From positions 478,523,294-478,587,293 of the forward strand of contig NC_133618.1 in the NCBI RefSeq assembly GCF_048593235.1: a stretch of DNA of 64,000 bases. The letters run 5' to 3'. The stretch is from Sminthopsis crassicaudata (lineage: Eukaryota). Positions 11,318-43,700 of the stretch are shown in pieces (the stretch's first letter is position 1; the number at the start of each line of letters is the position of its first letter). Under the pieces are notes generated by a model. That model made no database searches and had not been told where the DNA came from. It worked only from the letters and a program-made list of their open reading frames with translations. The position numbers and the translations under genes are program-made.

Positions 11318-11465
11318 TAATATATTGGATTACTTGCCATTTAGGGGAGAGGATGGGAGAAAACGGAGGGAGAATTGAAAGACAAGGTTTTGCAAGGGTT
11401 AATGCTGAAAAATTATCTATGCATGTTTTGAAAACAAAAAGCTTTAATTAAAAAAAAAAAAAAAA
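11318..11465 (+). mobile_element. Short L1 3'-end insertion
   Basis: L1 3'UTR plus poly(A); TSD aaaaaggaatgtt at 11305-11317 and 11466-11478. Confidence 0.8.
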
Positions 11466-14228
11466 AAAAAGGAATGTTCACTGAGAAGTTAAAGCAAAAA
11501 CAGAAATTCAAACACAATCCCTTTAACCAGGAGCATACTTCTCCCTTTTCACTTTGATTCCTAGAATTTTAAATTTAGAGTAGTTTGTGACATTCTTCTT
11601 CCCAGGAAGATCACATTCAGGTGTAGTGTAGTTGAAGAATGAGTTGCTGCCTTGCATGTAGGACATAATATCTTGATAGCCAGGTGGATCCACTGCTGAA
11701 TGGAATTCATTAGCTTGCTCCTCTGAGCTATTTCTTTCCCATTCTTGGTTAGCTGCTGTTCTGATCTTCCAAAGCTCACTAGATCCTTCTGTTTCAGTAT
11801 TATTTCACCCAAAATAAGAAAGAATGAATACAATAAGCACAGAAGACTCAACAAGGCTATGCACTCATTAGCTATGGGATGGTCCAGGTGGGGAGATAAG
11901 GGCTTGAGGCCTCTTGCCCTGTCAAGCAGGTTTATAAAATCTCTTTCCTTCATAACCACCAGGAAAAATAGAGTACAATTTGGCCTGTTTTTGCCTTTTG
12001 TATATACCCTCGATACCAAATTAGCATCCAATTAAAAGGCTCTTTTTTTTTTTTTTTTAAATACTATTCAATGAGTAGATAGGAAACAATCACAGATTAT
12101 CTATGTCTGCTAAGAATTGGGGGTAGGGCTTATTCTTGATGTATCATCATGTATTTCCAGAAACAAGCTCATCATTTGATAGGTAGTAGGCTGAACAGCT
12201 GCACAGGAGGCTAGTCCTTTATGTTATCTCAGTTGAGTTTTATCACAATCTTCCAACTTGGACTATTATTATCCTCATTTTATAGATGAAGAAATTGAGT
12301 TTGCTTCATTTCACACAGCTAATGAGACCTGCTTCTGATGTATTCCTCCTGTGTGACCTCCAACAAATCATTTAAACTCTCTGAACCTCAATTTTCTCAA
12401 CTCTAAAATGAGGGGATCTGACCAAATGGCCGATGAATCACTTCCAGCTCTAGAGCTATGACCTTAAGTATTGGAGGACAGATTTAGAACCAGATAACTG
12501 ATAACTCTCCATCCCCTCAATTCCAACTGTCTTTTGTTTAAAATATATATATACATACACGTTTCCTGTCTAGTAAGACTTGTAATATTAGTTTTGACCA
12601 ACTTTCTTACACAAATCTGCTTTTTAAATAGTCAAAATATCATTGATAATGCACACTGTTTTTCTTACTAACTACATTGTACTCCAAGACCAAGAAGACT
12701 GCTTCTTAGGTTATTTTTAGACTTCAAATATCAGCCTCTTTTCTAGAATAATTCAAAGCAGCACTATTTTTTTTTTCATCTTTTAAATGAGTGATTTGAA
12801 CCAGATAATTTAAAAAATGCTTCCAGCTCTATAAATCTATGTTTTTATTATTTCTAGCTCTTTACAACTCACCTAGGTTGGAAGTATAAGGACTAATTTA
12901 ATAGCTATACTTACTATATGTCAAATACTACACCAAATACTTTATAATTATTATCTCATACTTAGGAGATAAGGGCTATTATTATTCACATTTTATAAAT
13001 AAAACTGAGACAAACAGGTTAATTGATGAGCTCAGAGTCACACAGCTGATAAACTGAGTCTGGATATGAACTCAAATCTTCTAAGATCCAGGGCAAAGGC
13101 TCTGCCATTGCAATACCTCACTATTCTCAAAAGCTTTGAGCTGTTCTGTTTACAAGCTGGACCTTCTCTGGAAGCTTTAGGCAACTAATTCTAGCTGGTT
13201 ATCAATGGGAAGGGGTGTTCTAAGCAATGATACTAGAACTCTTAGGGAAGAATTAGCATTCTTCTGGGGATCTGACCCAACAATATGAATGGGACTTAGA
13301 GAAGTAACTCCTTGGAGGGGGAACATAAAAGTCAAATAAGTGATGAATCACCATCAAATCTTCCCAGGGACTTACTATATTGATGCCAGACATAGTATAG
13401 ACCCTCTATTGGCAGAGTCCCCTGTCCTGAACTGAACTCCTGAACTGAAAAGATCCTTTTGCCTCAGCCTGCCCCATATCTAGGGGTGATAGGTATACAT
13501 CTTCATACCTGGCTTTTGTGATTTATTTTGAAGCAAAAACACTCAATAGATTCGTCTCTTCCAGTTCCCTCTGAGCTGCCTTTCTTATACTAGTCATCTG
13601 TGGAACTGTCTTGCCTCAGTAGATTTCAATTAAAGCCTGCAAGTTGAATTGAGTGAATACTTTTTTTCAACTTGGCTTTTTAAAGGTTCAATGATATTGG
13701 TGCAGAAAAAAAACAAAAAACAAAAAAACAAAACAAAAAAAAAAAACCTGATCATTTAGAGATTATAGTAAATATATTTTTTCACTGTCAATTTTTCTCA
13801 AAAGAAATAAAATATTTTTACTATTTGTTAAAAGTTTTCATAAAGTAGAGACTGAGATCCACAGAACCCCAAAACCTCCCTTTAATTATTTGATTTCATC
13901 CATCCATGCATTTAATGTTCTTTACTAGCTAAAAGAATGATTAAGATTTGGCCATGTAAATTTCCGCCTTCAAAAAATTAGGGTTCCTTGAGATAGAGAG
14001 GTTTATGAGAGATAAAGTGGATACTTTTGATTACATGAAATTAAAAAGGTTTTGAGCAAAACCAATTCAGCTAAAATCAAAATAAAAGCACAAAACTGGA
14101 GTGGGGGAGAGGGGAATATTTGCAGCAAATTTCTCTGACAAAAGTCTCATTTCTAAAATATGTGGGGATATGAATCAAATTTGTAAAAATAAGAACCATT
14201 TCCCAATTGTTAAATATAAAAGAATATG

Positions 14229-29176: not shown

Positions 29177-29287
29177 TCACTCCTGCTCTTTGCTAGGTTT
29201 CTTATCACTCGGAGGTGGTGTGAGGAGTCCATTGGGAGCAGACACTCTCTCATCAGCCAACATGGCTTGTTTTTCATAAGCTTTGTC
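29177..29287 (-). CDS. CCNE1: CCNE1 last coding exon ([36 protein letters not shown])
   Basis: ttttag|GAC; TGA at 29179-29177; LLTPPxS Fbw7 phosphodegron. Confidence 0.96.
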   Translation of the reverse strand, partial: DKAYEKQAMLADERVSAPNGLLTPPPSDKKPSKEQE

Positions 29288-32200
29288 CTAAAACAAGATC
29301 AAAGGAGAGAAATGACACTGGTTAAAAAAAAAAAAGCAGGTTTTTTACATATTTATTTATTAATTTCTGAAGAGAACACATCTAATATTTCTTAAACCCT
29401 ACTACACTTTCAAAACTGTCCCTTATATTAAGGTATTTTAGCAAATCAACATTAATTTTGAGTAAAATAAATCTTAAATTCAGAAGTGATAATCTAGGGA
29501 CAAGGATATTAAAAGGGGGAAACGATCAGTTTCATATTGCTATAATAAGGTATATCTCAAATCAAATTCAGGATTTTTTTACCAACTGATTTCTTAAAAA
29601 TCTACCTTAGATGTATGAAAAAACTAACAAAAATATAAATTTATGAAATAAACTCACAAAAAAACAAAGTCATATAAAGTTTATCTAACACCTAGAAGTA
29701 GAATTTTCTTCAGTGATTTAAAAATATATAATTAAATGGGTGGGTGGGTGTCTTTCTGGGTTATTTATATGTAGTCTTGTCTGGGGTAAGGACTACATGG
29801 ACTGGGTAAGGTCACTTCTAGAATGATGTTCTATTTTGTCATCATTAAATCAAGTCATAAGAAAATATAAATGTTAATACTGACCAGCAAATTTATGGTG
29901 TTCACATGAGTCTGAATGTTATGCATGTCTTCACTAGGAACACCCTTAAAATATTTGAGTCTGGCTCCACCTACTTCCTTTACAGCCATAGCAAATGGGA
30001 CCATCCATTTCACACAATCCTCTACTTCTGGCCAATCAAATCCTGGAAAACAAAGTGAAAATTGCTTAAGCTAAAGCTTAAAATGTAGATATGTCAACTT
30101 TATACATGCTTCAAATTAAACTGAAATCCAACTTACCTGAAACTTTTTTCATTATCTCAGTGGAAGAGAAATGATATAAGGCAGATGCAGCTAGCACTCC
30201 ATAAGTAAAATCAAAGCAGCCCATATCCAGGATGCAGACATCTAAAAGCTATAGGAGGATGGGGAAAACATGATATAGAACAAGTCCATCAATCAATACC
30301 TCCATAAAATTAAGATAGATGAGCTGTCACACAAAATGGGATAAGTTATAGTGCTGGTACTTACCTCAGCAACCTGAACAAAGATTTGCTGAGGATACTG
30401 TGGCATAAGCACTTCTTCATACAGGTCATTGAGATAAGCAACCTGCATATATACATTTAGCCAGGACACAAGTGTCATCGGACTTAAACGCCATTTAAGG
30501 GCCTAGAGTAAAATGAAGGAGAAGGCAAATTTAGAGATCAACAGCTAAGCCAAAAATAATGGAGCACCCTGCCATGCAGTGGTAGATTGTCATACAAATA
30601 ATCAACCATTTTTGAGACTTAGAAGGTTATCACTTAATTTAAAGAGTATGATAATACAATTGAAGATGAATCAAATTCAAACAGGCAATTGCTTTCATCT
30701 TTGAAGAAATTCTAAATGAAGATTGAGCAGAAAATGTTTTATAAATCATTACTAACTTACCTTCATAATGATTAATTCCATGGTAAGAATTTCTTCCTCG
30801 GTACAAGCTCCATCGGTCACATAAGCAAACTGGTACAACTTTGGTGGATAGATTTCCTGAATGAAAAATAAATAAATAATGCCATCATGACCATCAAATC
30901 CAAACATAAATATTTTTATGTCATAATGTTTATCTAAACATGCTTTTGCTGAACCAGTTTTGACTGATGAAGATATAAAAACATAAACATTCTACTTTTG
31001 ACTTAAGAATCTTGAGTTCTAGCACCTTTAAATGGTTAATCCATAGCAATATAGTCATGGAAAAATATAAGAAACCACTAGTAGTCAAAATGCCTGTGAA
31101 ATCTGAAAGAAATTAATAAACTGTGCTTGCTGTCATATACTTTTAGAGCATTTTTTTTTTGGTCCCCTCAATGTTGTTAGCTTCACATTTAAAAGTTACC
31201 TAACTTTTAGCACAAGTTGCCAAGATTAAGGCTGTTTCTTCCATCTAAACCATATTCATAGTCCAAAAGTAAAGTACTTTCCATACCATAAAAATAAAAC
31301 AGTCTGTTTTCTAAACATTCTAAACATGAACAGATTTCCTATCCTTACTGAAACTAACATGTAATACTAATATAAAAACTTGAACAAGTTTTACCTCAAG
31401 TTTGGCAGCTATAAATAATGAGGTAATCCCAATAAGCTGCAAAAGTGTTTTTGTAATATTTCGCTGTGTTGCCATATATCGATCAAAGAAGTCTTGTGCC
31501 AAGTAATACGTCTCCCTGTGAAGTTTATAGACTTCAGACACCTGAAAAAATATTTAATAAGTTTTAGTACATTTACCTGAAAGAATGTTTTTCATGGGCT
31601 TTCAATGTTTTGCTTTTAGGCAAAACAGCAAAAACAAAAGTGCTGACAAGTTTACTTTTCTCCATTCTAACTTATAAGTATACTTATATAGAGAACTTGA
31701 GTCTTACTTAATATGGTCCAACTCTTCCAAATGTAGGTTTACGTAGGTGTAATGTTTATGTATAATATATATTTAATACTTAAGAGAATTAAAAACTTGT
31801 TTTCAAGAGAAACTCTCTTAAGAATTCTCATAAATTATTATCAATCTTTATAAATTTAATTTTAAAAATGTTATATGACTTGGGCATCACATACCTTATA
31901 GCACTAGATGGTTGAAATAGCAAAAAAGTTTAATAAACATTAATATACAGTCATTTAAAGACAGGCGCAAAGTCAAGCTTCAAAGGCATCACAGTATGGC
32001 AGAAATATTAATGGACCAAGAGGAAGACCTTGATCCTAGTCCCAGCTCTATCATTAAGTGAATATGTCTTTATTCTCATTTGTAAAACAGGTAAAACTAC
32101 CCAGCCTAATTGGTTGTTGTGAGAATCATAAGTTGTGAAGGTGCTTTGTAAATGACAAATTGCAATAAAAATGTAAGATATCACAAAAGCTAAAAAAAAA

Positions 32201-35200
32201 AAAACACTAAACACTGAATCTTTCTAGTAATAGGATATGCCAACATTAACATGTTAATGTTTGAAAATTTGTCTATGTTAGAATCTAAATTGTATGCGAG
32301 CAAAAGGTAGGCATATTTTTCAAGGGATAGGTAGAAAAGAATGATTGGAAGGGTAAGGAGACAGAAACTTAAGTAAACAAAATAAGTTTATGAAGATTCC
32401 TTAGCATACCAAAACCACTTCTAATGATTAGAGTTAACATCCCTCACTAGTATTCAAGTTCCACTTATATTTTGGAACAGAAGTAAAACCCAACTCTAAA
32501 AGTGAAACTCTTTTGTTGTTTCTAAGACAAATTTTCAGAAATCCTTTTCTAAGCCCCAAATTTGGTACTTGCCATTAATAGTGTAGGCACCCTTTACATA
32601 CACAAAAGTCACAGTTGTAATAAGTATTAGGTTTCTTAGCTTATCTGACTTTTAAACTGTTACTCAGTTTAACCCAGAAATAGCAGAATTTGGTAACAGA
32701 GTTAAGAGTTACAGGAGGCATAATTTTAAAAAATAATTTATCAAAAGTAATACATGATGAAGAACCTCTCATAAAAGATTGGATATGCCAGATAAGATGG
32801 ATTTACCTATAACAGTCACAAAATAGGGAACAACTTTACTTCATGTCTGATACTGATTTTAAACAATCAAAATGTTTGTTCCAGGGCCAAATTAGAAAAG
32901 AAAAACAGAATTACTTTGATTTCTATGTTTTGGAAATGAGAAAGGGAATGAATACTCCATGGATTAAAAAAAAAAACCAGAACACCAATTCAAAGAATTC
33001 TTTGTAAATGAGCATAATATGATCACGTACTTGTTTATACTATACTGTCACAGTTAATGAGAACAGTCAAACTCACCTCCATCATCCAATCCAGAAGGAT
33101 GGATCGCATTCTTGGCTGGAGAGAAGGATGTCTCTCCATAAAGTTCTTATCCCTCAGATATACCTGTTCTTTGCTTAACATGATTTTCCAAACTTCATCT
33201 CTATTTGCCCAGCTATAAAAAAAAATGAAACACTTATTAAAGTGCCTAAAAATTAGAAGGAAAGCTATAGTGAAAAGCTACAGATATATAAATGGATATG
33301 GCAGTTTAACTACTCACCCCAATAAGGGTAAGGGTGTAGCTCTATGTTGTGAAAAGTTGTGGGTTGGCATATTAGAATTAGGTAAGGATGGCTCATCCCA
33401 TCCTTTATCAGGTGTAAGAATCACTGACCATGGATTTCTGAGAAAAGCCTGTTGAAGAAAAACATTTTTTTAAGTGATGAATTACTCTAAATCACTCAGT
33501 ATAAAGGATATAAATGATTCTTTAAATCAGATAATATTTATTAATAAAAAAGAAATATTTACACACTACAGAAAAATATTGGTGTCATTGTCTTAATTAA
33601 AACAGAACCTTGCATTTTGTGGGATAAAGACAAGTCTGGATTAGGGATTTTTAACTCTTTTGGCAATCAGGTAAAGAGTATAGACTACTCAGTGTTTTGT
33701 TTTTTAATACATAAAATACACAGGATTACAAAATAAATTAGTTATACTGAAATATACTTATCAAAATATTAAAAAAATAAATTCATGAATCCAATTAAAT
33801 ATATTCAAAGACAGCAGATTAAGAACCCTTTGTCTAAATAAATGAAATTCATATAACCTCAAGTATTCATTTTGGCTATTAACTTTGTCTCTTTATCTAG
33901 CAAGCCCCTCCTATTTAAAATTTAATTTTTAGAAACATTCTTCACACCCTTTTGTGGCATTTTATAAAAGATCTCTTGGCTTCTATTACCTCATTTACTT
34001 AGACTTTATCTAAAGTTACAGACCAATCTACAATCAAATTAACAAAAAGAGATCAAGTAAATATATTCTACAACAAAATATTTGCTTTCAGCTGGCTGTG
34101 CGTACTAAAAAGTATAAAAATAAGATTTCCCAAACCAAACTGCTCTGGTAACTTTTGCGGTAGCAAATCTGAAATGAAATCCATCAGTTGCTGCACCTTT
34201 CAGATTCATGATAGAAGGAACTAGGCAACCTTTTCACATAGCTCCCTTAAATTGAAATTTTACTTTCTGTATCTGCTCTATCTTCATATGGTACTAAAAA
34301 GTACAAGAATACAACTTTAAAAAAATTTAACTCCCTTGAAAGAGAATCAAAATGCTTGACACATTTAAAAAATTTTTATACATTTTAAGAAAAACAAACA
34401 GTAACTCTAGGATTGTGAGAACTAAAATTTATGCCATCTATAAAAACCATAAAAACAGAAAATCAAAACATTTAAGACCACCTTTGCACACCAAATGTAT
34501 CCCAAATGTTATAGTGGTCTCAGTTGAAGTTTTGGAATATTTGATTTCTATTCAAATAGGAATGTTTTGACAAAGTTTGAGTTACATTAAGACTTATTTT
34601 AAGTTACCATATTTAATTTCTGGCTTTATAAACAATTTTAGACTCAATTTTAGGAACTCCTTATCCTCTTTTTTTTTTTTTTTTAAAGCAATGCAGCCAT
34701 CTTGCCGAAAATGTCAGCCAACTATGCCTCTATGGAAAACCCGCAGAAAAGTCTGAATTTATTTGCATTTCCACTATTTTAATAAGGAGGGAGCCTATTA
34801 AGTTTTAATACAAAAGACTGAAAAAATTGTAAATGAATGTAATCTAGCTTCTGGCTCAAAAGTAGTGTTGATTAGGCAATAATACGTAGTTCCTTATTTA
34901 ATACATTTTACATACTATGTATCATTCAGAGGTTACTTATGCATTTTTCAAGCTGCAAAAAAGTATCTCAGTTGAAAATAAGTCTTCTCCCTGCCTCCTC
35001 TAAAAATATAAGACTACTCTTCACCCAAGGCAGAAAGAGCTCTAGATATGCAAGATTTCCCCCTCAGAGTTCATGGGATAATTTGTGGGAGAAAGGGAGC
35101 TCCTACTAATTAGTCTATAACATGCTACTGATACCATCTCTATAATTCAACATGTTAAGAGTGCTTTAAGTTAATTTTACTCTTTCTATCAGTGGGCCAG

Positions 35201-38200
35201 GAATTTTGTTATGAGGGCACAATCAGTGTCATCTTCTCTGACTATGTGATTGGCAAAGCTAAGAATAGGTTTTTGTAGATAAGTTGCCAAACATCTTAAA
35301 ACTACAAGTCAGAGAATAGTTACAAGAGAGCTAACAATTGATAAGTTTTTTCCCAGAAGACACATCTTAGAAAAGAAATAGGTAAATCAGAACAACATTC
35401 TACTATTATGTTGAGTGTACCTTGAAGATGTACCTAGCTTTCAAAAACTAGCCCAAAGTAAAGAGAGTTATAGAGAAGAATGGTATAAACTAAAAGCTCA
35501 AGTTAATATAACAATGAAATAGAATGTTAGGGCTACAAATTTCCTGAAGCAACATGGTGGATATACTATATTTGTCTTAGAATTCCACAAAATTGCTACT
35601 AATATTTAGTAGGAGACTTGAAGATAAATATTATCCTAGGACTAAATATGGTGTTGATGAAGTAGTTATTCAAAACAACTTTACTAATGATTTTTAAAGA
35701 CAGTTTTCAGAAAACTGTCCATTGTTCTATTACATATGCACTTACTTCAGCAGATCAATGATTATTACATGTTTGACTGAATGACTTTATCCACAAACCA
35801 ACCAAACGATTTCTATTTCCAAATTTTGCCTTTACAAATTAACATTCCCCAAGTAAACTGATAAACTCAGATATCAATATGTTTAAAAAATAAATAGGAA
35901 ACTGTTCTGAGTATGTAGAAAATTTCAAGAAACCCTTAAAAATATCCATGAATGGAAATTAATAAGTAAATTCTATAATTGGAAAGTGTTATACAGAGGT
36001 AAACTATTATCATATTCTATTAATATATCAGAGACCAAGAGATCTGCTTGGTCTATTCCTCATTTAAGAACTGGAAACATTTTTAAGTATTTACATTTTA
36101 AAAATAAGCTTAATTAGCTCAGTATCCATTGTTGCTGTTCTCCCTAAGCAATGAAGTTGCGCATAGTAGATACTATGATTAGGTACTATGGTACTAAGAT
36201 TTGTGAGAGAAGAAAAAATAAATTTATTTTCTAATCAAAGTATATCTAATGCCATATTTTACATTTTTAAATAGGATTATAATACTTCCCATAACCCTCA
36301 TTATTGGGTTTGATTAAAAGATAGGCTTAGAGAGTATGAGAAGACATGAGAAAAAAGGAATAACTATTGCCTTTACTAAACTAAAAAAATTTTTTTCCTA
36401 TATAAGAGGAAGTCACCAATCTCACTCTTCAATGTTCAGTGAATCCTGCTTATGAAAGACTGAATGTGTCTTTTATATTCAACTATGACTACCATTTCAA
36501 ACAATGTTGCCCATCTGCTGTGAAGCACTTTACTCTTTAAGGTTCCAGCTGCTACCTCTGTTTATATATGTCTCATTGTTCATTATCCTATGAAATGATG
36601 TACTACCCAACCCCAAATTAGTCATTAGCATTTAACTCAGAATAAATAAAATATTCCTGCTTTTGTTTTTTATATGATGTTATAAGATATGACAGGGGGT
36701 AGGGTGGGGAGAATGAGAGATATTTTCTCTAAATCCAAACCATGACTATGATTTCCAGTCATTTCTGGAGGTAAAGATAGCATGGACTCTTTTCATAATG
36801 AGCATCAGCTATCACAATGTATAATTTTAGTGGCTTATCTTTAAGGGAAAGATAAGACAAATAGATTAGTCCACTGAAATTCTATAATGGAACGTACATT
36901 AATATTCGATATCTTCAATAGGTATATAAGTGAACTTATACCTGTTAAGGTCAGTTCAAATCCCAGCTGGTAGGGACACTTATTTAAATGTTAAATACAT
37001 ATAAAAATCACAGGCCAGAGACAGTGAGGCAGTCATCAAGATACAAATCAAGGCATTTTATTTAATGTTACCACGTGCTCTGTGCAGAAGGAATTCAAGA
37101 ATTTCCAAGAATTTCAGAGGTATAAAAGGACTTTCCAAATAGAATGAGATCTTCATTTAGAAGCTTATTCTTTCAGAAACCATCATTAATCCACTTAACT
37201 TGAGCTATTTGTTCTTCTTCAGAAGTTCACTAAGACATTTGGATCACATAAGAGCGCCTACACTGGAATAAGAATCTAGAGAGCTTGGCTTTAAGTCTGC
37301 CTGCCAGTAATTAGCTTTGTTACTCTATAGGCAAATCATTTTACCTCTCTAGGACTCAGTTTCCTTCCCAGTAAAAGGAAATGCTTAAAACAGATATTTG
37401 CAAGGATTTTTTCCAGGTATTATAGGACATCTAAAATCTAAGGGGAAGAGTGAGCAGTCTCAATTTAAGAGCTGGGAATACATAATTAGGCAAGGATTAC
37501 ATTTAATTCCACTGAGCGAGGAAGAATAAAAGAATATAGTAGAAGCATGATTATAGTAGCATGGAGAGAGTAAACTGGAGAGTTAAAAAATCATCTTTAT
37601 CAATACTGGAAAATAACAATGATCATACTTGTAGATTATGAATCTTACCGGTATCCTGACTGCAGTTCTTCCAATTGTTTCTCTTTTGGCCAAAACTTCA
37701 TCTGGGTCCAGCAAAAACTATATCCAAAAAACACATTCAAACAAGAGAGAGAATCTTAAACACAAAAACTGTGAGCATAAAGTTTGACCCAAAAAACTGT
37801 CTTTTCTAATCCAATCTTTTCCCCACAATACTAAGGATCCCTACAGTACTAGGATACTTGCAATCTATTTCAGGGAAGTAATTCCCCATATTTTACTTCT
37901 CTTGTACTCACCACAGCTACATCTGCCTTTCTTTTCCGGGATCGAGAGGATTCTGTTGAGCTGCTGCCACTTTGCTCATTTACCCTCTTCATGTTCTCTT
38001 CCTCTTTTCCATTCCCATCAGGGCTTCTTTCCCCCTTCCTTCCAGTACTGGGACTTTGATCATTCTTTCCGTCAAAGAGCTCACCAGCACTTGGATCTTG
38101 CCTGGCATCAGGATTGGGGTCTTCCCTGCCATCAGGTCTTGGATCTTCCCTGCCGTCAGGGGTTGGATTTTCCCTTGCATTTGGTCTTGGCTCATCCCTC

Positions 38201-39072
38201 CCATCAAAAAGTTCATGGAGACTTGGATCTTGCTCCCCACAGATAAGCTCATGAAAATTTGGATCTTCTTCCTCACAGATGAGATCAATAGGATTTGGGT
38301 CTTCTTCCTCACAAATAAAGTCATCCTCATCAGGGTGTGGGATTTCCTCCTCACAAATAAGATCATCAGGGTTTGGGCCTTGCTCCTCACAAATAAGATC
38401 ATCTGAGTTTGGGTCTTCTTCCTCACAAATAAGTTCATCTGCGTTGGGATATTCTTCGTCACAGATAAGCTCCTCAGGACTGGCATCTTCCTCGTCAATG
38501 GCATCTTCTTCATCACACATAAGCTCATCAAGGATGGGATCTTCCTCTTCACAGATCAGCTCATCGGCATGGGGATCTTCTTCCTCACAGACAAGCTCAT
38601 CTAAGCTCGAACCTTCCTCCTCACAGACAAGCTCATCTAAGCTCGAACCTTCCTCTTCACAAACAAGTTCGTTGGGGTTTGGATCTTCCTCTTCATAGAT
38701 AACTTCATCAAAGCTTGGATCATCGCCATAAACAAGCTCATCAATACTTGGATCTTCTTCCCCGTCAAAGAGCTCATCAGGGCTTGGCTCATGCGTACCG
38801 TTCATAAGCACATCGGGACTCCGCTCCTGTGTACCATTCATAAGCTCATCATGGCTTGGCTCTTCCTTTCCATTCACAAGTTCACCGGAGTTTGGTTCTT
38901 CCTTCTCATCAACATGATCTTCCTTCCCATCCTGGGCAAATTCCTCCTTCTCGTGGCATTCCTCAGAACCACTGCAAAAAATAAAACCAATGGGGATTAT
39001 TGGGAGGAGCTTTGCCCCTCAACCAACTTCTCTCTTTCCCTGCCACAGAGATACTCACCTTTCTCTGGACAT
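29177..39072 (-). CDS. CCNE1: Cyclin E1 (G1/S-specific), spliced CDS of 11 coding exons, 2172 nt / about 723 aa, with a roughly 316-aa acidic repeat insertion near the N-terminus
   Basis: Exons assembled by hand: 39059-39072, 37912-38971, 37649-37717, 33318-33448, 33077-33212, 31395-31541, 30761-30856, 30365-30502, 30137-30248, 29885-30042, 29177-29287. All introns are GT-AG and the joined frame is open. The peptide has the cyclin E hallmarks [22 protein letters not shown], the cyclin box ([21 protein letters not shown]) and the C-terminal LLTPPPS degron. Confidence 0.97.
29885..30042 (-). CDS. CCNE1: CCNE1 exon 11 ([19 protein letters not shown]...[13 protein letters not shown])
   Basis: 158 bp, ttttccag|GA...CTG|gtcagt. 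Confidence 0.97.
30137..30248 (-). CDS. CCNE1: CCNE1 exon 10 ([37 protein letters not shown])
   Basis: 112 bp, tag|CTT...CAG|gtaagt. Confidence 0.97.
30365..30502 (-). CDS. CCNE1: CCNE1 exon 9 ([46 protein letters not shown])
   Basis: 138 bp (one codon longer than human), tag|GCC...GAG|gtaagt. Confidence 0.98.
30761..30856 (-). CDS. CCNE1: CCNE1 exon 8 ([32 protein letters not shown])
   Basis: 96 bp, cag|GAA...AAG|gtaagt. Confidence 0.98.
31395..31541 (-). CDS. CCNE1: CCNE1 exon 7 ([23 protein letters not shown]...FIAAKLE)
   Basis: 147 bp, cag|GTG...GAG|gtaaaa; cyclin box core. Confidence 0.98.
33077..33212 (-). CDS. CCNE1: CCNE1 exon 6 ([45 protein letters not shown])
   Basis: 136 bp with canonical splice sites; start of the cyclin box. 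Confidence 0.97.
33318..33448 (-). CDS. CCNE1: CCNE1 exon 5 ([44 protein letters not shown])
   Basis: 131 bp, ttcttcaacag|GCT...GG|gtgagt; contains TPDK and TPLPLL, homologous to human TPDK and SPLPVL; phase fits exon 6. Confidence 0.9.
37649..37717 (-). CDS. CCNE1: CCNE1 exon 4 ([23 protein letters not shown])
   Basis: 69 bp, tag|TTT...CCG|gtaaga; matches human FLQDPDEEMAK exon in length and sequence. Confidence 0.93.
37912..38971 (-). CDS. CCNE1: CCNE1 exon 3, expanded to 1060 bp (acidic LxCxE repeat array, then NMKR...[14 protein letters not shown])
   Basis: Acceptor tttattttttgcag|T and donor GTG|gtgagt. Open frame for 353 codons ending in the conserved cyclin E NLS RSRKRK. Entry phase matches exon 2. 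Confidence 0.9.
38086..38202 (-). repeat. Coding 24-bp (8-aa) repeat, about 5 units, consensus GREDPRPD
   Basis: GRDEPRPN / ARENPTPD / GREDPRPD / GREDPNPD / ARQDPSA in the exon 3 translation. Confidence 0.85.
38200..38904 (-). repeat. Coding 36-bp (12-aa) minisatellite, about 19 units, consensus EEEDPNPDELIC
   Basis: Periodic gagcttatctgtgaggaagaagatcc motif. Units 38585-38620 and 38621-38656 are identical at 35 of 36 nt. Confidence 0.95.
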
Positions 39073-39102: not shown

Positions 39103-40180
39103 CTAGAGGGACAGAAAGAGGAAAGATTAAAAGGACTAAGTCTTTGCCGAATTGTAGCGATCTATCCTGCGGCCATCTAATTCCCAAGAGGCCACCTCCC
39201 ACCTAGTCCTTCCACCTTCTCTCCCAGGGCAGTGGCAGGGAAAGCCTTCCAAGCCTGGGGGGAGGCGGGGAGAAGGAATGGCAATTTGGAAAGAGAGAGG
39301 GGCTACGCATTCTCAACCCCAATCTCCAAGAGATAACCTACCCACCCATTGCAATGAGACTTTCTAACCTCCCGCTCAGCCCTCTGAGAACAGCGGTCCA
39401 CGCGGTACGCTAATCTTTCAAACTCAAGTGCAACCAGGACTACCAGACTTGCTTCTGTGGGTTTATGTGCAAAGTTAGGGAACTGGGGTGGTATGGGGCA
39501 AAGTCCCTCCACCCTGTCCCCTCTTGGCACATCTCCACACAAACCATCAGGCACGAGAAAAAAAAGCAACCTAGTGGTAGTAGCTGCGGTGCGGCGGTGG
39601 AGGCGGCGGCGGCGGTTCATACGGATAATTCTGGGGTCCGCACTATCCCGATTCCCCTGCTCTCGAATCTCACTCACCTACTCAACCTCCCCCTTACCTC
39701 CGCCGTTGCACTGGCAGGCGGCCACACACCGGGAATCCAGGTGGCAGAAGCAATGACCGAGCAAGGCAGGAGTCTTGCCAGGGGTAGCCTTGCCAACCTG
39801 CCGGATGACAGGCGGCTAGTACCGCGGACCTGGGTCAAGTCTGCTAGCGAGCTGACCGTGCACTCCTCTGCCTCTACCTCCCTAGCCCATCTGAGCCTAT
39901 CTCCCGCCTGCTCACTGCCCGCTCTGGGGCTGGCTGGCTCCAGCTTGCTGGCTGGCTGGCTGGGCTGGCCTGCCCGCCCTCAGGGGCGGCGTTTGCGGCT
40001 CCCACTCCCCGCCCTCCTTCACCGATCTCCCGCCTCCACATGCAGCTCCTCCCGCCAAGCCACACCGTGCGGAGTGTGGCCCTTGCCGGCTCCGCCGACT
40101 GGTCTTGACCGGTGGCGGCTGAAGGACGCAGAGCTCCATCTCTGGCACCAGCCGCTGTCATTGCGCTGGAAGGATGAGGA

Positions 40181-40278
40181 TGCGAGGACCCGGCTGCAAG
40201 GACCCGGCTGCGAGGACCCGGCTGCAAGATAGGCTGCAGGGTCTTGGCTGCAGGGACTTGGCCGCAGGGATTTGGCTG
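40181..40278. repeat. 14-bp GC-rich minisatellite in the CpG island (gaggacccggctgc x3, then ggctgcagggactt-like x3)
   Basis: Seen directly in the sequence. Confidence 0.85.
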
Positions 40279-40424: not shown

Positions 40425-40770
40425 CCGCAGCGGGCGGCGGCTGGTGGCAGAAGCGGCAGCGGGCACAGGCGGTGGAGGCTGTGGCAGAGGAGCTGGAGGA
40501 GGCGGTGGGGGTGGCGGTGGAGGCAGAGGTTGAGGAGGTGGAGGTGGTGGCGGCGGCAGAGGCGGCGGGGGCTGCTGGTGAATGCCCGCAGGCGGCAGCT
40601 GGCGATCGGGGTTGGCCGAGGGAGGCAGGGTGAAGAGGAGGAGAGGCAAAGGCCGGAGGCGAAGAAGTAGGAGGCCGAAGGAGGCGAAGCTCGGAGCTCC
40701 TGGGCAGCTCTGGTGGGATGTGCAGGGCGCAGCTACCTTCCTTTATACCCTGACTGCCCGCGCCCCCCTC
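40425..40770 (-). other. Putative non-coding exon 1 of CCNE1
   Basis: Runs from the CERM-like TSS to a donor CGG|gtaagg at 40424. Other donors exist (39697, 41536), so the exon cannot be fixed without RNA data. Confidence 0.4.
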
Positions 40771-40771
40771 C

Positions 40772-40789
40772 AGCGGGACATTAAAAAAA
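40772..40789 (-). promoter_or_regulatory. CERM-like element (AT-rich tract plus variant E2F site, TTTTTTTAATGTCCCGCT) at the likely TSS
   Basis: Closely resembles the TTTTAAATGTCCCGCT cyclin E repressor module of the mouse/human cyclin E promoter. Confidence 0.75.
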
Positions 40790-43700
40790 TATCTAAGGCG
40801 CGCAGTGGCCCCCCCACCCCACCCCCTCATTTCTCCCCCTCCTCTCCTTACTTCCCCACCCCCACTCCCTACCCTCCTCCCCCTACCCCCACCCCAGGTC
40901 TGGCCAGTCCCGGCCTCAGTGCTTGGGCCGGACCAGGGCCAGCTCTCTCTGCCTGGGCGTCGAACTCTGGAGGTAGGGGGCACGGGGCCAGCAGCTCCGG
41001 ATGGGAGGCTGCACCGCCCCCCCACCCCCTTCAACGTGCAGGGAGCATGCGCATTAAAGTGCAGCTGCCTAAGTGGGGGGGGGGGCCTCCTGGAGCTCTG
41101 GGAGAGGCGAAGGGAGGGGGGGGTGCTTGCAACTCTAGGGCCCGGGGAAGGGAGGCGGGGCTGGCCCAAGCACTGAGCTGAAGGAGCTGCAAAAAAACAG
41201 CGTGGTCGGCTCCAAATCCGTGTAAACAAGGGAGCGATTGTATAGCCGTTTTGGAGGGGGGGGAATGAGTATGGGGCCCCCAGACTTCAGTCTTGGTTCC
41301 AGCCTCAGAATTGGGGAACGGTATGGGATGAACTTAGAAAGTGGAGTGGAAGGGAGGCGTTACTGTTCTCTGGTGCCGTCGCGGTCGTAGTTGAGCTTGG
41401 TGTCTTTCTCCACGGTGTGTGGCGGGAGGGAGTCTTAGCCTCTTTTCTTGAGTTTTGAGACCGTGCCGCTAGTCCCACCTCTCCCACTTCTCCCCTTTTT
41501 GGGGATATATCTAACGCAGGATAACACCAAACTTACCTGGCTCTGCAGAAACTTGTGTGATTTTCCATTCTTCTGCCTCTCATTCATGCGCAACCACTGA
41601 TTCCAAGTCTTGGGACACCTTTCCAACCCAGGTCGAGCTTTCTAGCTCTTGAGACCTCTTCGCACTTACGGGCTGTTGCAGCCATTCTGGCCCCTGGTTT
41701 TATGCACCTTAGTACTTAGCTGTACATGGGTCTTGCATTGATATCAGACATGACTGTGAATTGGGGTTCTTCCAAAGGAACCTTCCAAAAGACTGTAAAC
41801 TGAAATATGATGTTCCTGGGCCCCTCAACAAAATGCCACAGCCATATTTTCTGAACCAAAATTGGGAGTGGGGGAAAGTTTTATCTGACAAAGAATGTTT
41901 CTTTGGGAAAGCATCCTTGGTTGAAATATACTTTCTTTTCTTAAAATGAAACTCTGAAAAATACAGAGTTTAGAATCTCTACTCCCAAACCCAACTCTAG
42001 GAGGTGTAGTAGATACTTGATTATATTTGTGGGATGAATGAGTGAATGAATAAAGACATAGCTGTTTCGTGGGAAGAGAATGGATTTGGAGTCAGAGGTC
42101 CTGTATTCATTATCAAGCTCTGCTGCTTACCGCTAGTGTGACTTTTGGCAAATTAGTTTCTTTATCTATCGATCACAGGTTGGACTCTCCATAGATGAAG
42201 ATCTAACTGACATTTAGTGCTTCTTCAAATGAATAAGGATGACAGGATGTTATGAATAAATGGATAATGATAGAGGGCTTCTGCCAATTAATGAATAAAG
42301 ATGATGGTCTCCATGGTGCCTGGTGTGAGAGGGATTGCAAACTGATTACTAGGCTCCAGGTGTGCTTGGGGAAAGAGAGGCAGGGAGAAACCTGAGTAAG
42401 TTGATCATGCAGTTTAATTGTACTGAGTTAAAGGAATAGGCTTTTAACCCAAATCTTTCTCTTATTGACTCTGATTTGTGAGGCAACTCCCTTAATCTCT
42501 TTGGGTCTCAGTTCCCATTCTGTAAAATGAAAATTAAATGGAATTAGATTAGACCTGCCAACAAAAAACACCTTCCAACTCAACAGTCAGTGATTTTTTT
42601 TAAGTTCATGAGGCAAAATTTAATTAAACAAACATTTATTTATTTATTTTTGAGTACTCACCATATACAAATCTCTACTAGGGAAATCCAAGATAAAATA
42701 TGTCCACTGGCCTCAAAAAGCTTACAGTTTAGTGCTCATTTAGGAAAACTAAATCTTCCTTAATCCCTTGGTTTTCTGTTTTCCTGATCCTTTCCTAGAC
42801 CATTTTTACTGAAGTTTAGGGAATAACAAAATAGGGATTTGGAGGGAATGATACTGGTTTAGATTAGAGGAACAAGATTAGACACAAACATGGGAAATGG
42901 GAGAAGACAAGCGCCAAATTTGAAGAGAGCCATGCACATTTCATCATCTGGGGTAGGGACCTTTCTGCCTTTGGAGGGGGATCTCCCTGGGAAAGAGACA
43001 GCCTTCTCAGAGCACACTACACCTAATCCTCCCTTACAGATATACAAATTATAGTTCCTCTTGGGAGATATGGACATAATGAGGCAAGGCAAGCATTTTG
43101 AGGGTTTGTTTTCTCTCTGATAGTCCGTGAAGTTTGGGCAGCTGTGTGCACAACTGGACTTTGCTGTCACTGAGGCAGCCTCTGTCTGTTTGCAGTTGGT
43201 ATTGATTACACTCCAAGGAAGTGAGCTCTCCTTTATCCTTGGAGCTCAGTTTTCAGTTTAGGGATTATCTGGACCCAGGGCTTTGCCTTCCTGCCAGACA
43301 TTTGGATGTTTCTAGGCTCCCTTGTTAGTATCTCAACTCCTGTTTGTCAAAGAATGAATTGACCATTTGTTAACTGGTTTTGAGGAGTAGGGATAGTAGC
43401 AAAGCAGAGTGAAATTGTTGTCTGAGTCAGAACTGGGTAACCTGTATCACAGTTTGCTGTGAGTTCAACCAGAGACAACTTCTGAAGATTACCTGTCCAT
43501 TCCAATTACATCTCTTCTACCTTTCAAAACTAAGTCCAAGTGATTGGACTGATGAAACCAGTCTTGAAAGTTTCAGAACTATCCCTTAGGCAAAAATATG
43601 AAGTAATGGAAATCATCTTTAGCATCTGTACTTGGAACCACCTACCACAGACTTGAATTCTTGTACCCCTCCCAAATCTGAGGGTAGACCTCACTTTATC

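Follow-up and report, generated by a model that had tools for sequence, protein, structure and literature searches.

How did the cyclin E1 gene of the fat-tailed dunnart Sminthopsis crassicaudata come to hold a coding exon of more than a thousand nucleotides (nt), and is that exon part of the protein? The gene (CCNE1) lies on the minus strand of a 64,000-nt stretch of contig NC_133618.1 (positions 478,523,294 to 478,587,293), here called the window, and runs there from 39072 to ~29180. Its third exon encodes a long acidic segment with a tandem array of LxCxE motifs, the type of motif that docks in a cleft of the pocket proteins Rb, p107 and p130. We consider it likely that exon 3 was expanded on the marsupial stem, that it is a constitutive coding exon and that it yields a cyclin E1 of ~720 amino acids (aa) bearing this LxCxE array.

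All coordinates below are on the minus strand of the window. The coding part of exon 2 (39059..39072, 14 nt) opens with the ATG of M1 at 39072, encodes MSRE and two further nt (phase 2), and ends at the donor AAAG/GTGAGT. Intron 2 (38972..39058, 87 nt) runs from GT to AG with a T-rich tract ahead of its acceptor, and exon 3 (37912..38971, 1060 nt) is a single open frame. It is followed by intron 3 (37718..37911, 194 nt) and exon 4 (37649..37717, 69 nt), which begins FLLDPDE. A database protein, S. crassicaudata cyclin E1 (XP_074149371.1, listed as P0143, 723 aa), is 100% identical to the window across exons 3 and 4 and also maps to other exons; with it we placed the other coding exons, which encode Cyclin_N and Cyclin_C, at 29180..33448. 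On the strength of this match the gene is dunnart CCNE1, and its long product is already modelled in RefSeq. The protein matches Pfam Cyclin_N (PF00134, 6e-43) and Cyclin_C (PF02984, 9e-8), and residues 1-358 are without any Pfam match. Exons 2 and 3 together encode 358 aa, of which 36% are Asp or Glu, with in-frame Met at residues 1, 49, 61, 156 and 332. An earlier reading made from the letters of the window (the first-pass annotation) had proposed phase 2 for exon 2, introns of 87 and 194 nt around exon 3, and a long form of ~723 aa; its coordinates are exact in the window and its length is that of the database protein. The further in-frame Mets that it noticed in exon 3 were found as M49, M61 and M156, besides M332. 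Exons were joined only in scripts, for translation and codon alignment; the searches used exon 3 alone and then database proteins.

Dog served as the eutherian comparator, and no human sequence was used. Dog CCNE1 has an exon 2 of 23 coding nt (phase 2), an intron of 88 nt, an exon 3 of 88 nt and a next intron of 207 nt, and its exon 3/exon 4 junction falls at VAV/FL.DPDE, as in the dunnart. The ~395-410-aa CCNE1 products of eutherians and monotremes are orthologous to the dunnart protein and share with it the RSRKRKA(D/N)VAV-FLxDPDE junction, Cyclin_N and Cyclin_C; the phase-2 exon 2 and the introns of ~88 and ~200 nt are shared by the dog gene. The difference lies in exon 3, which has 88 nt in dog and 1060 nt in the dunnart, with 321 added codons and 11 LxCxE motifs. 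The ratio of 1060/88 = 12.0 bears out the roughly 12-fold growth proposed at first, here measured against dog instead of human. The first-pass annotation also placed ~316 extra codons in one exon; they do all fall within exon 3 between small introns, whereas the count against dog is 321. It further equated two Met codons of the dunnart gene with M1 and M16 of human cyclin E1. M1 stands in the same exon and phase as in dog, whereas the equivalence with M16 was not supported, as set out with the start codons below.

The long exon recurs in other marsupials. In an exhaustive search of 1.84 billion representatives, exon 3 had one strong match, the 712-aa cyclin E1 of the wombat, with 87% identity over the whole exon. 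None of the other 22 matches of this search (P0002-P0023) has an LxCxE array; they are unrelated acidic or low-complexity repeats. Neither the 353 aa of exon 3 nor the final 113 of them gave a match in a word-index protein search, whose length filter leaves out full-length proteins; that collection contains no transcript-derived fragments of this region. With the long wombat protein as query, all 120 matches listed were of the cyclin E type, and the named ones were nearly all cyclin E1. Long cyclin E1 proteins (712-747 aa, 10-12 LxCxE motifs) occur in 11 marsupials from four orders: Sminthopsis, Sarcophilus, Antechinus, Dromiciops, Petaurus, Trichosurus, Notamacropus, Phascolarctos, Vombatus, Monodelphis and Gracilinanus. 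Among the vertebrates in the matches listed, cyclin E1 has ~395-415 aa in eutherians, echidna, birds, reptiles, amphibians and fishes. Expansion of exon 3 is, by this distribution, marsupial-wide and old, and not peculiar to the dunnart genome. In the wombat the array is hidden from UniProt by a mismatch between annotations: the two Ensembl/UniProt entries (P0150 and P0151, 370 and 362 aa) start with MFQFIDFSS..., which is derived from an intron, and omit exons 2-4, while the RefSeq protein has 712 aa.

The DNA of the dunnart was compared with the orthologous loci of seven other marsupials (eight in all) and of dog. In all eight marsupials exon 2 has 14 coding nt and the same donor, and intron 2 measures 86-92 nt. 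Exon 3 ranges from 1027 to 1129 nt, each length being 1 mod 3 and the differences only multiples of three. Its donor is GTG/GTGAGT or GTG/GTAAGT, intron 3 has 176-200 nt, and the splice sites are conserved. In the codon alignment of the eight exons, the ratio of nonsynonymous to synonymous change (dN/dS) is 0.07-0.18 in the LxCxE array, with one outlier of 0.35 against Sarcophilus that is based on just 16 changes. It is 0.03-0.13 in the Cys-less units that precede the array and 0.16-0.32 in the tail, and dS reaches up to 0.9 between dunnart and opossum. Variable sites at codon positions 1, 2 and 3 number 51, 55 and 208. Because dN/dS is low and the frame is conserved across marsupials, the array appears to be translated and constrained.

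These data also bear on whether the array is an artefact of annotation, an intronic or untranslated repeat next to a true protein of canonical size. The Ensembl wombat models of 362-370 aa, which omit the array, would fit such a view, but their N-terminal residues come from an intron. The frame has been open since at least the marsupial crown, indels keep to multiples of three between conserved flanking splice sites, dN/dS is ~0.1 and third positions show a fourfold excess of change. We regard an artefact as highly improbable.

Tandem Repeats Finder resolved exon 3 into 36-nt and 24-nt periodicities. The first block (38668..38904) consists of six 12-aa units without Cys (..ELVNG, ELMNG, VLMNG, ELFDG, ELVYG, EVIYE) that are nearly invariant across marsupials. 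The LxCxE array follows (38233..38667), built from 36-nt/12-aa units with the consensus EEDPNPDELICE; it holds 11 strict LxCxE motifs and one FICEE. C-terminal to it lie 24-nt/8-aa PDGREDPR-like units (38090..38206), the last segment of the exon reads ENMKR..., and downstream of the array a basic RSRKRK cluster (37927..37944) is the proposed nuclear localisation signal (NLS) of cyclin E. Residues R350-K353 of this cluster are invariant in 24 aligned vertebrate cyclin E1 proteins.

Individual units can be followed from species to species. Between the dunnart and opossum, tammar or monito del monte, units at the same position are 86-90% identical, compared with 65% for other units, and the positional partner is the best match in 11/12, 12/13 and 15/15 unit comparisons. 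By this measure the repeat units are positional orthologues across marsupials. The one unit type with varying copy number is EEG(A/S)SLDELVC, which has 1-4 copies among marsupials; the wombat is without one further unit. The EEG(A/S)SLDELVC units are, judging from these counts, the only part of the array that is still turning over. Two neighbouring 36-nt units of this type in the dunnart (38596-38667) are identical at 36/36 positions.

Because its units are positional orthologues and are constrained in frame, the array is old: it arose on the marsupial stem, between the divergence from eutherians and the opossum-australidelphian split, and purifying selection has acted on it in frame since then. 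The marsupial crown split lies ~80 million years back. We propose that an ordinary ~88-nt exon would have been enlarged on this stem to ~1.0-1.1 kb by tandem amplification of the 36-nt and 24-nt units. The enlarged exon would have been fixed before the living marsupials diverged, and then nearly frozen under purifying selection.

The Cys-less block holds a pattern of its own. At the position that is Cys in the later units, the codons across 38668-38904 run AAT, AAT, AAC (Asn), GAC (Asp), TAT, TAT (Tyr) and then TGT (Cys). The series from Asn to Asp to Tyr to Cys consists of single-base steps if the other codon of each residue is used (GAT for Asp). This N-to-D-to-Y-to-C gradient is present in 8/8 marsupials compared and is, on that comparison, a frozen ancestral state.

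Where does translation of this gene start? The first-pass annotation held that exon 3 grew between two ancestral start codons that were both kept, and that a choice between M1 and the ATG of M332 (37990..37992, context aacATGa), its equivalent of human M16, or else proteolysis, could toggle between proteins of ~723 aa and ~392 aa. This would fit the A at -3 of an in-frame ATG that three dasyurids have in common, and also the Met that eutherians and echidna carry ~11 residues ahead of RSRKRK, where one echidna isoform starts. The ATG at 37992, however, is confined to the three Dasyuromorphia, namely Sminthopsis, Sarcophilus and Antechinus. At this place the DNA of Monodelphis, Notamacropus, Vombatus, Dromiciops and Trichosurus reads AAG (Lys), the proteins of Gracilinanus and Phascolarctos have K, and 8 of the 11 marsupials lack any Met in the part of exon 3 that follows the array. 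A MAFFT alignment does not pair the dasyurid Met with dog Met16; the former stands 16-20 residues from RSRKRK, the latter 11. The second "ancestral" start is, on these alignments, a dasyurid-only codon, which speaks against its retention from an ancestor, and the second start of eutherians and monotremes (dog Met16, the start of the short echidna isoform) is not kept in marsupials. With the eutherian and monotreme Met as outgroup, loss on the stem and regain in dasyurids would need fewer changes than three or more independent losses.

The context of M1, GCCACAATGT, is near the vertebrate consensus and conserved in marsupials. Between M1 and M332 the dunnart has 42 ATGs; three share the reading frame, and the other 39, which mostly stem from GAT GAG codons, do not. 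A purine stands at -3 in 13 of the 42. With 42 ATGs ahead of it, M332 is not plausibly reached by scanning ribosomes. Were exon 2 skipped, the first ATG in exon 3 would be in the wrong frame and would start a reading frame of 16 codons. For the three dasyurids, no protein that starts at M49, M61, M156, M332 or the equivalents in Sarcophilus and Antechinus is on record. We judge a toggle between M1 and 37992 to be very unlikely, and it is likewise unlikely that the start at 37992 is a designed switch to a short form. The accompanying expectation that the long form should dominate is supported by the context of M1 and by the intervening ATGs, and the long form is almost certainly the form. Translation would begin at the exon 2 ATG, whose context is near the consensus, and continue across the array. 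This would yield a ~720-aa cyclin E1 with an acidic segment, bearing 10-12 LxCxE motifs, N-terminal to the NLS and the cyclin box.

Splicing could in principle also shorten the protein. Within the array, TGT GAG GA codons give rise to seven donor-like GTGAGG sites, and there are three weak acceptors; each pairing removes 2 mod 3 nt. All pairings would thus break the frame, which contradicts an in-frame bypass through these cryptic sites. Purines make up 65% of the sequence in the 3' part of exon 3, where a scan found no good acceptor, much as first noted; the earlier account of a region free of acceptors that could skip the array did not mention two in-frame AGs, both weak, at 38197 and 37930. 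The scan counts pyrimidines in a crude way and is not a trained model; the real acceptor of exon 4 scores just 0.56 in it, and weak sites may escape it. Two short wombat models from Ensembl (362 and 370 aa) were considered as evidence of a short isoform and were ruled out by their intron-derived N-terminal residues.

A short form could nevertheless exist beside the long one, which would be compatible with a constitutive long exon 3. Proteases might remove the N-terminus, or, downstream of the array, an internal promoter or a weak acceptor might be used. Proteolysis has a precedent in human cyclin E, which elastase cleaves to N-terminally truncated, hyperactive forms, and a long, acidic and presumably disordered segment would be open to proteases; the AGs at 38197 and 37930 could serve the splicing variant. 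The 11 marsupials, however, have no annotated short isoform beyond the two wombat models that start inside an intron, and the donors and acceptors inside the array all break the frame. We think a coexisting short form rather improbable. Any short form is more likely to come from N-terminal proteolysis or an internal transcription start than from 37992. The low-molecular-weight forms of human cyclin E (LMW-E) illustrate how the array might be shed: truncation of the N-terminus gives active forms with altered localisation. They differ in arising by elastase-type cleavage in tumours, and the marsupial case is an analogy.

What could such an array do in a cyclin? Across 131 units from the 11 species, the Cys and the final Glu of the motif are present in 131/131 and the Leu in 123/131. 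Position -1 is E or D in 130/131 units and -2 is mostly D or E; +1 is E in 114/131 and +2 is D in 86/131. Affinity for the pocket cleft is determined by acidic residues at -1 to -3, by an acidic C-terminal stretch and, for high affinity, by a bulky hydrophobic residue at +2/+3 (bioRxiv 10.1101/2022.06.10.495386). The array fits the LxCxE core and the acidic-flank determinants for the cleft of Rb, p107 and p130. Each species conserves one unit whose +2 residue, counted from the end of the motif, is bulky and hydrophobic; in the dunnart this is LICEEEI (38341..38361), and among the single units it is the predicted strongest binder of the pocket. The single units are otherwise predicted to be of weak affinity, as in cyclins D1 and D2. 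Multiplied ten- to twelvefold, this weak, cyclin D1/D2-like profile suggests avidity or rebinding, and not one tight site. The most probable mechanism, at about even odds in our view, would be a multivalent tether that docks cyclin E1-CDK2 in the LxCxE cleft of the three pocket proteins.

Several observations weigh against the picture of a long cyclin E1 with a pocket-binding array. In most units no bulky hydrophobic residue stands at +2/+3, where D or G occupies +2 and P or A occupies +3; a single unit per species has Ile at +2. Constraint on the six Cys-less units is no weaker than that on the units with LxCxE. The inclusion of exon 3 is argued from selection and from RefSeq models, and two weak in-frame acceptors follow the array (38197 and 37930). 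Disorder of the segment is a separate matter: an AlphaFold2 prediction from a 24-sequence alignment gives residues 1-360 as coil with a per-residue confidence (pLDDT) of ~30, but a model this poor throughout (mean 35.9, the cyclin box included) does not tell disorder from fold in the array.

Some of these points feed a different view, in which the array is translated and its main job is other than binding the LxCxE cleft. It could be an acidic-hydrophobic activation or histone-binding segment, a binder of poly-SUMO that resembles SUMO-interacting motifs (SIMs), or a Cys-based redox or metal site. The strong constraint on units without Cys (DELMNG, DELFDG, DELVYG) and the frequent lack of a hydrophobic +2/+3 residue fit this view. 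So does the residue just after the motif Leu, which is always hydrophobic (I/V/M), a feature that LxCxE binding does not need. Stretches such as IDLI followed by acidic residues look SIM-like. Against it, invariant Cys and final Glu, a nearly invariant Leu and acidic flanks make up the exact LxCxE signature and not a generic acidic tract; SIMs and activation domains need no Cys, and metal sites usually use paired Cys. We hold a main role outside the cleft to be unlikely, at roughly the level of a coexisting short form. Together, the constraint on the Cys-less units and the invariant hydrophobic residue after Leu nonetheless indicate that LxCxE binding is not the whole story.

The proposed docking role has parallels among cyclins and viral proteins. 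Cyclin D carries an LxCxE, and cyclin E-CDK2 normally docks on Rb by RxL and its hydrophobic patch. In D-type cyclins the LxCxE lies N-terminal to the cyclin box, as in the marsupial protein, and binds the Rb pocket cleft, a docking route to Rb that the marsupial motifs would share; in D1 and D2 it is without a hydrophobic +2/+3 residue, like most of the marsupial units. D-type cyclins have one LxCxE, whereas marsupial cyclin E1 has 10-12 in tandem, in a strongly acidic repeat and on a partner of CDK2, and the D-type N-terminus has no sequence homology to the array. The kinase pUL97 of human cytomegalovirus (HCMV) uses an LxCxE in its non-catalytic N-terminal region to recruit all three pocket proteins and phosphorylates them at multiple sites, the same logic that we propose for cyclin E1-CDK2. 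It is a viral CDK-like kinase and not a cyclin, is not homologous and has no array of 10-12 copies. HPV E7, SV40 large T and adenovirus E1A share the LxCxE core, the acidic residues that precede it and the acidic stretch that follows. They have a single motif with Leu or Met at +2, where the marsupial array has one unit with Ile at +2 per protein. The array also differs from these tumour-virus proteins in being part of a host gene that has been under purifying selection through all of crown-marsupial history.

By analogy with cyclin D, which has one LxCxE, or with pUL97 and its own motif, the array would bring cyclin E1-CDK2 to the pocket proteins. We consider it possible, with slightly less than even confidence, that marsupials have rewired the G1/S transition in this way, the array letting cyclin E1-CDK2 bind hypophosphorylated Rb, p107 and p130 directly and with high avidity. 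If so, a host cyclin would have the docking trick of cyclin D, pUL97 and tumour-virus oncoproteins, the cyclin D step would perhaps be bypassed or reinforced, and the array would compete for the pocket with its other LxCxE clients. The decision for S-phase entry centres on cyclin E-CDK2 and Rb, and debate continues on the route by which each cyclin finds Rb, be it LxCxE, RxL or helix docking. A mammalian infraclass with a constrained 10-12-copy LxCxE array in cyclin E1 would be a natural experiment on this question, and it predicts docking of CDK2 complexes that depends on the cleft. It would also be a clean case of a coding exon that grew twelvefold by tandem duplication and was then frozen. 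The long array-bearing form is the only annotated cyclin E1 of marsupials. Searches of the literature turned up neither an account of the marsupial array in cyclin E1 nor anything relevant on cyclin E blots in opossum kidney cells. The array apparently sits in public databases as unremarked gene predictions and is undescribed in the literature.

Conserved elements also lie upstream of the coding exons. The most conserved upstream block in the eight marsupials spans 40573-40822 (0.95-0.98 in 50-nt bins) and contains GGGTATAAAGG at ~40745. On its 3' side follow a GC-rich stretch, in which no ATG was seen on reading, and a GCGG/GTAAGG donor near 40425. From this arrangement and its conservation, the segment 40425..40822 is probably the CCNE1 core promoter with a non-coding exon 1. 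A scan for the E2F consensus gave one match, at chance level and far upstream. Within the would-be intron 1, a 100-nt block (40173-40272) is 98-100% conserved in 8/8 marsupials and carries CAGCCGGGTCCT more than once; an alternative first exon and a regulatory element are both conceivable.

Intron 2 contains CCATTGG, an inverted CCAAT box, at 38985-38995, ~20 nt upstream of exon 3, in three dasyurids. The same site reads CATTGGC or TATTGGC in the other five marsupials, and dog has none at that place. Finally, in the Antechinus flavipes locus (L006) the 3' cyclin-box exons occur twice in tandem (11333-12117 and 12580-13364), in a record that splits the gene in two; the tandem copy is probably an assembly duplication.

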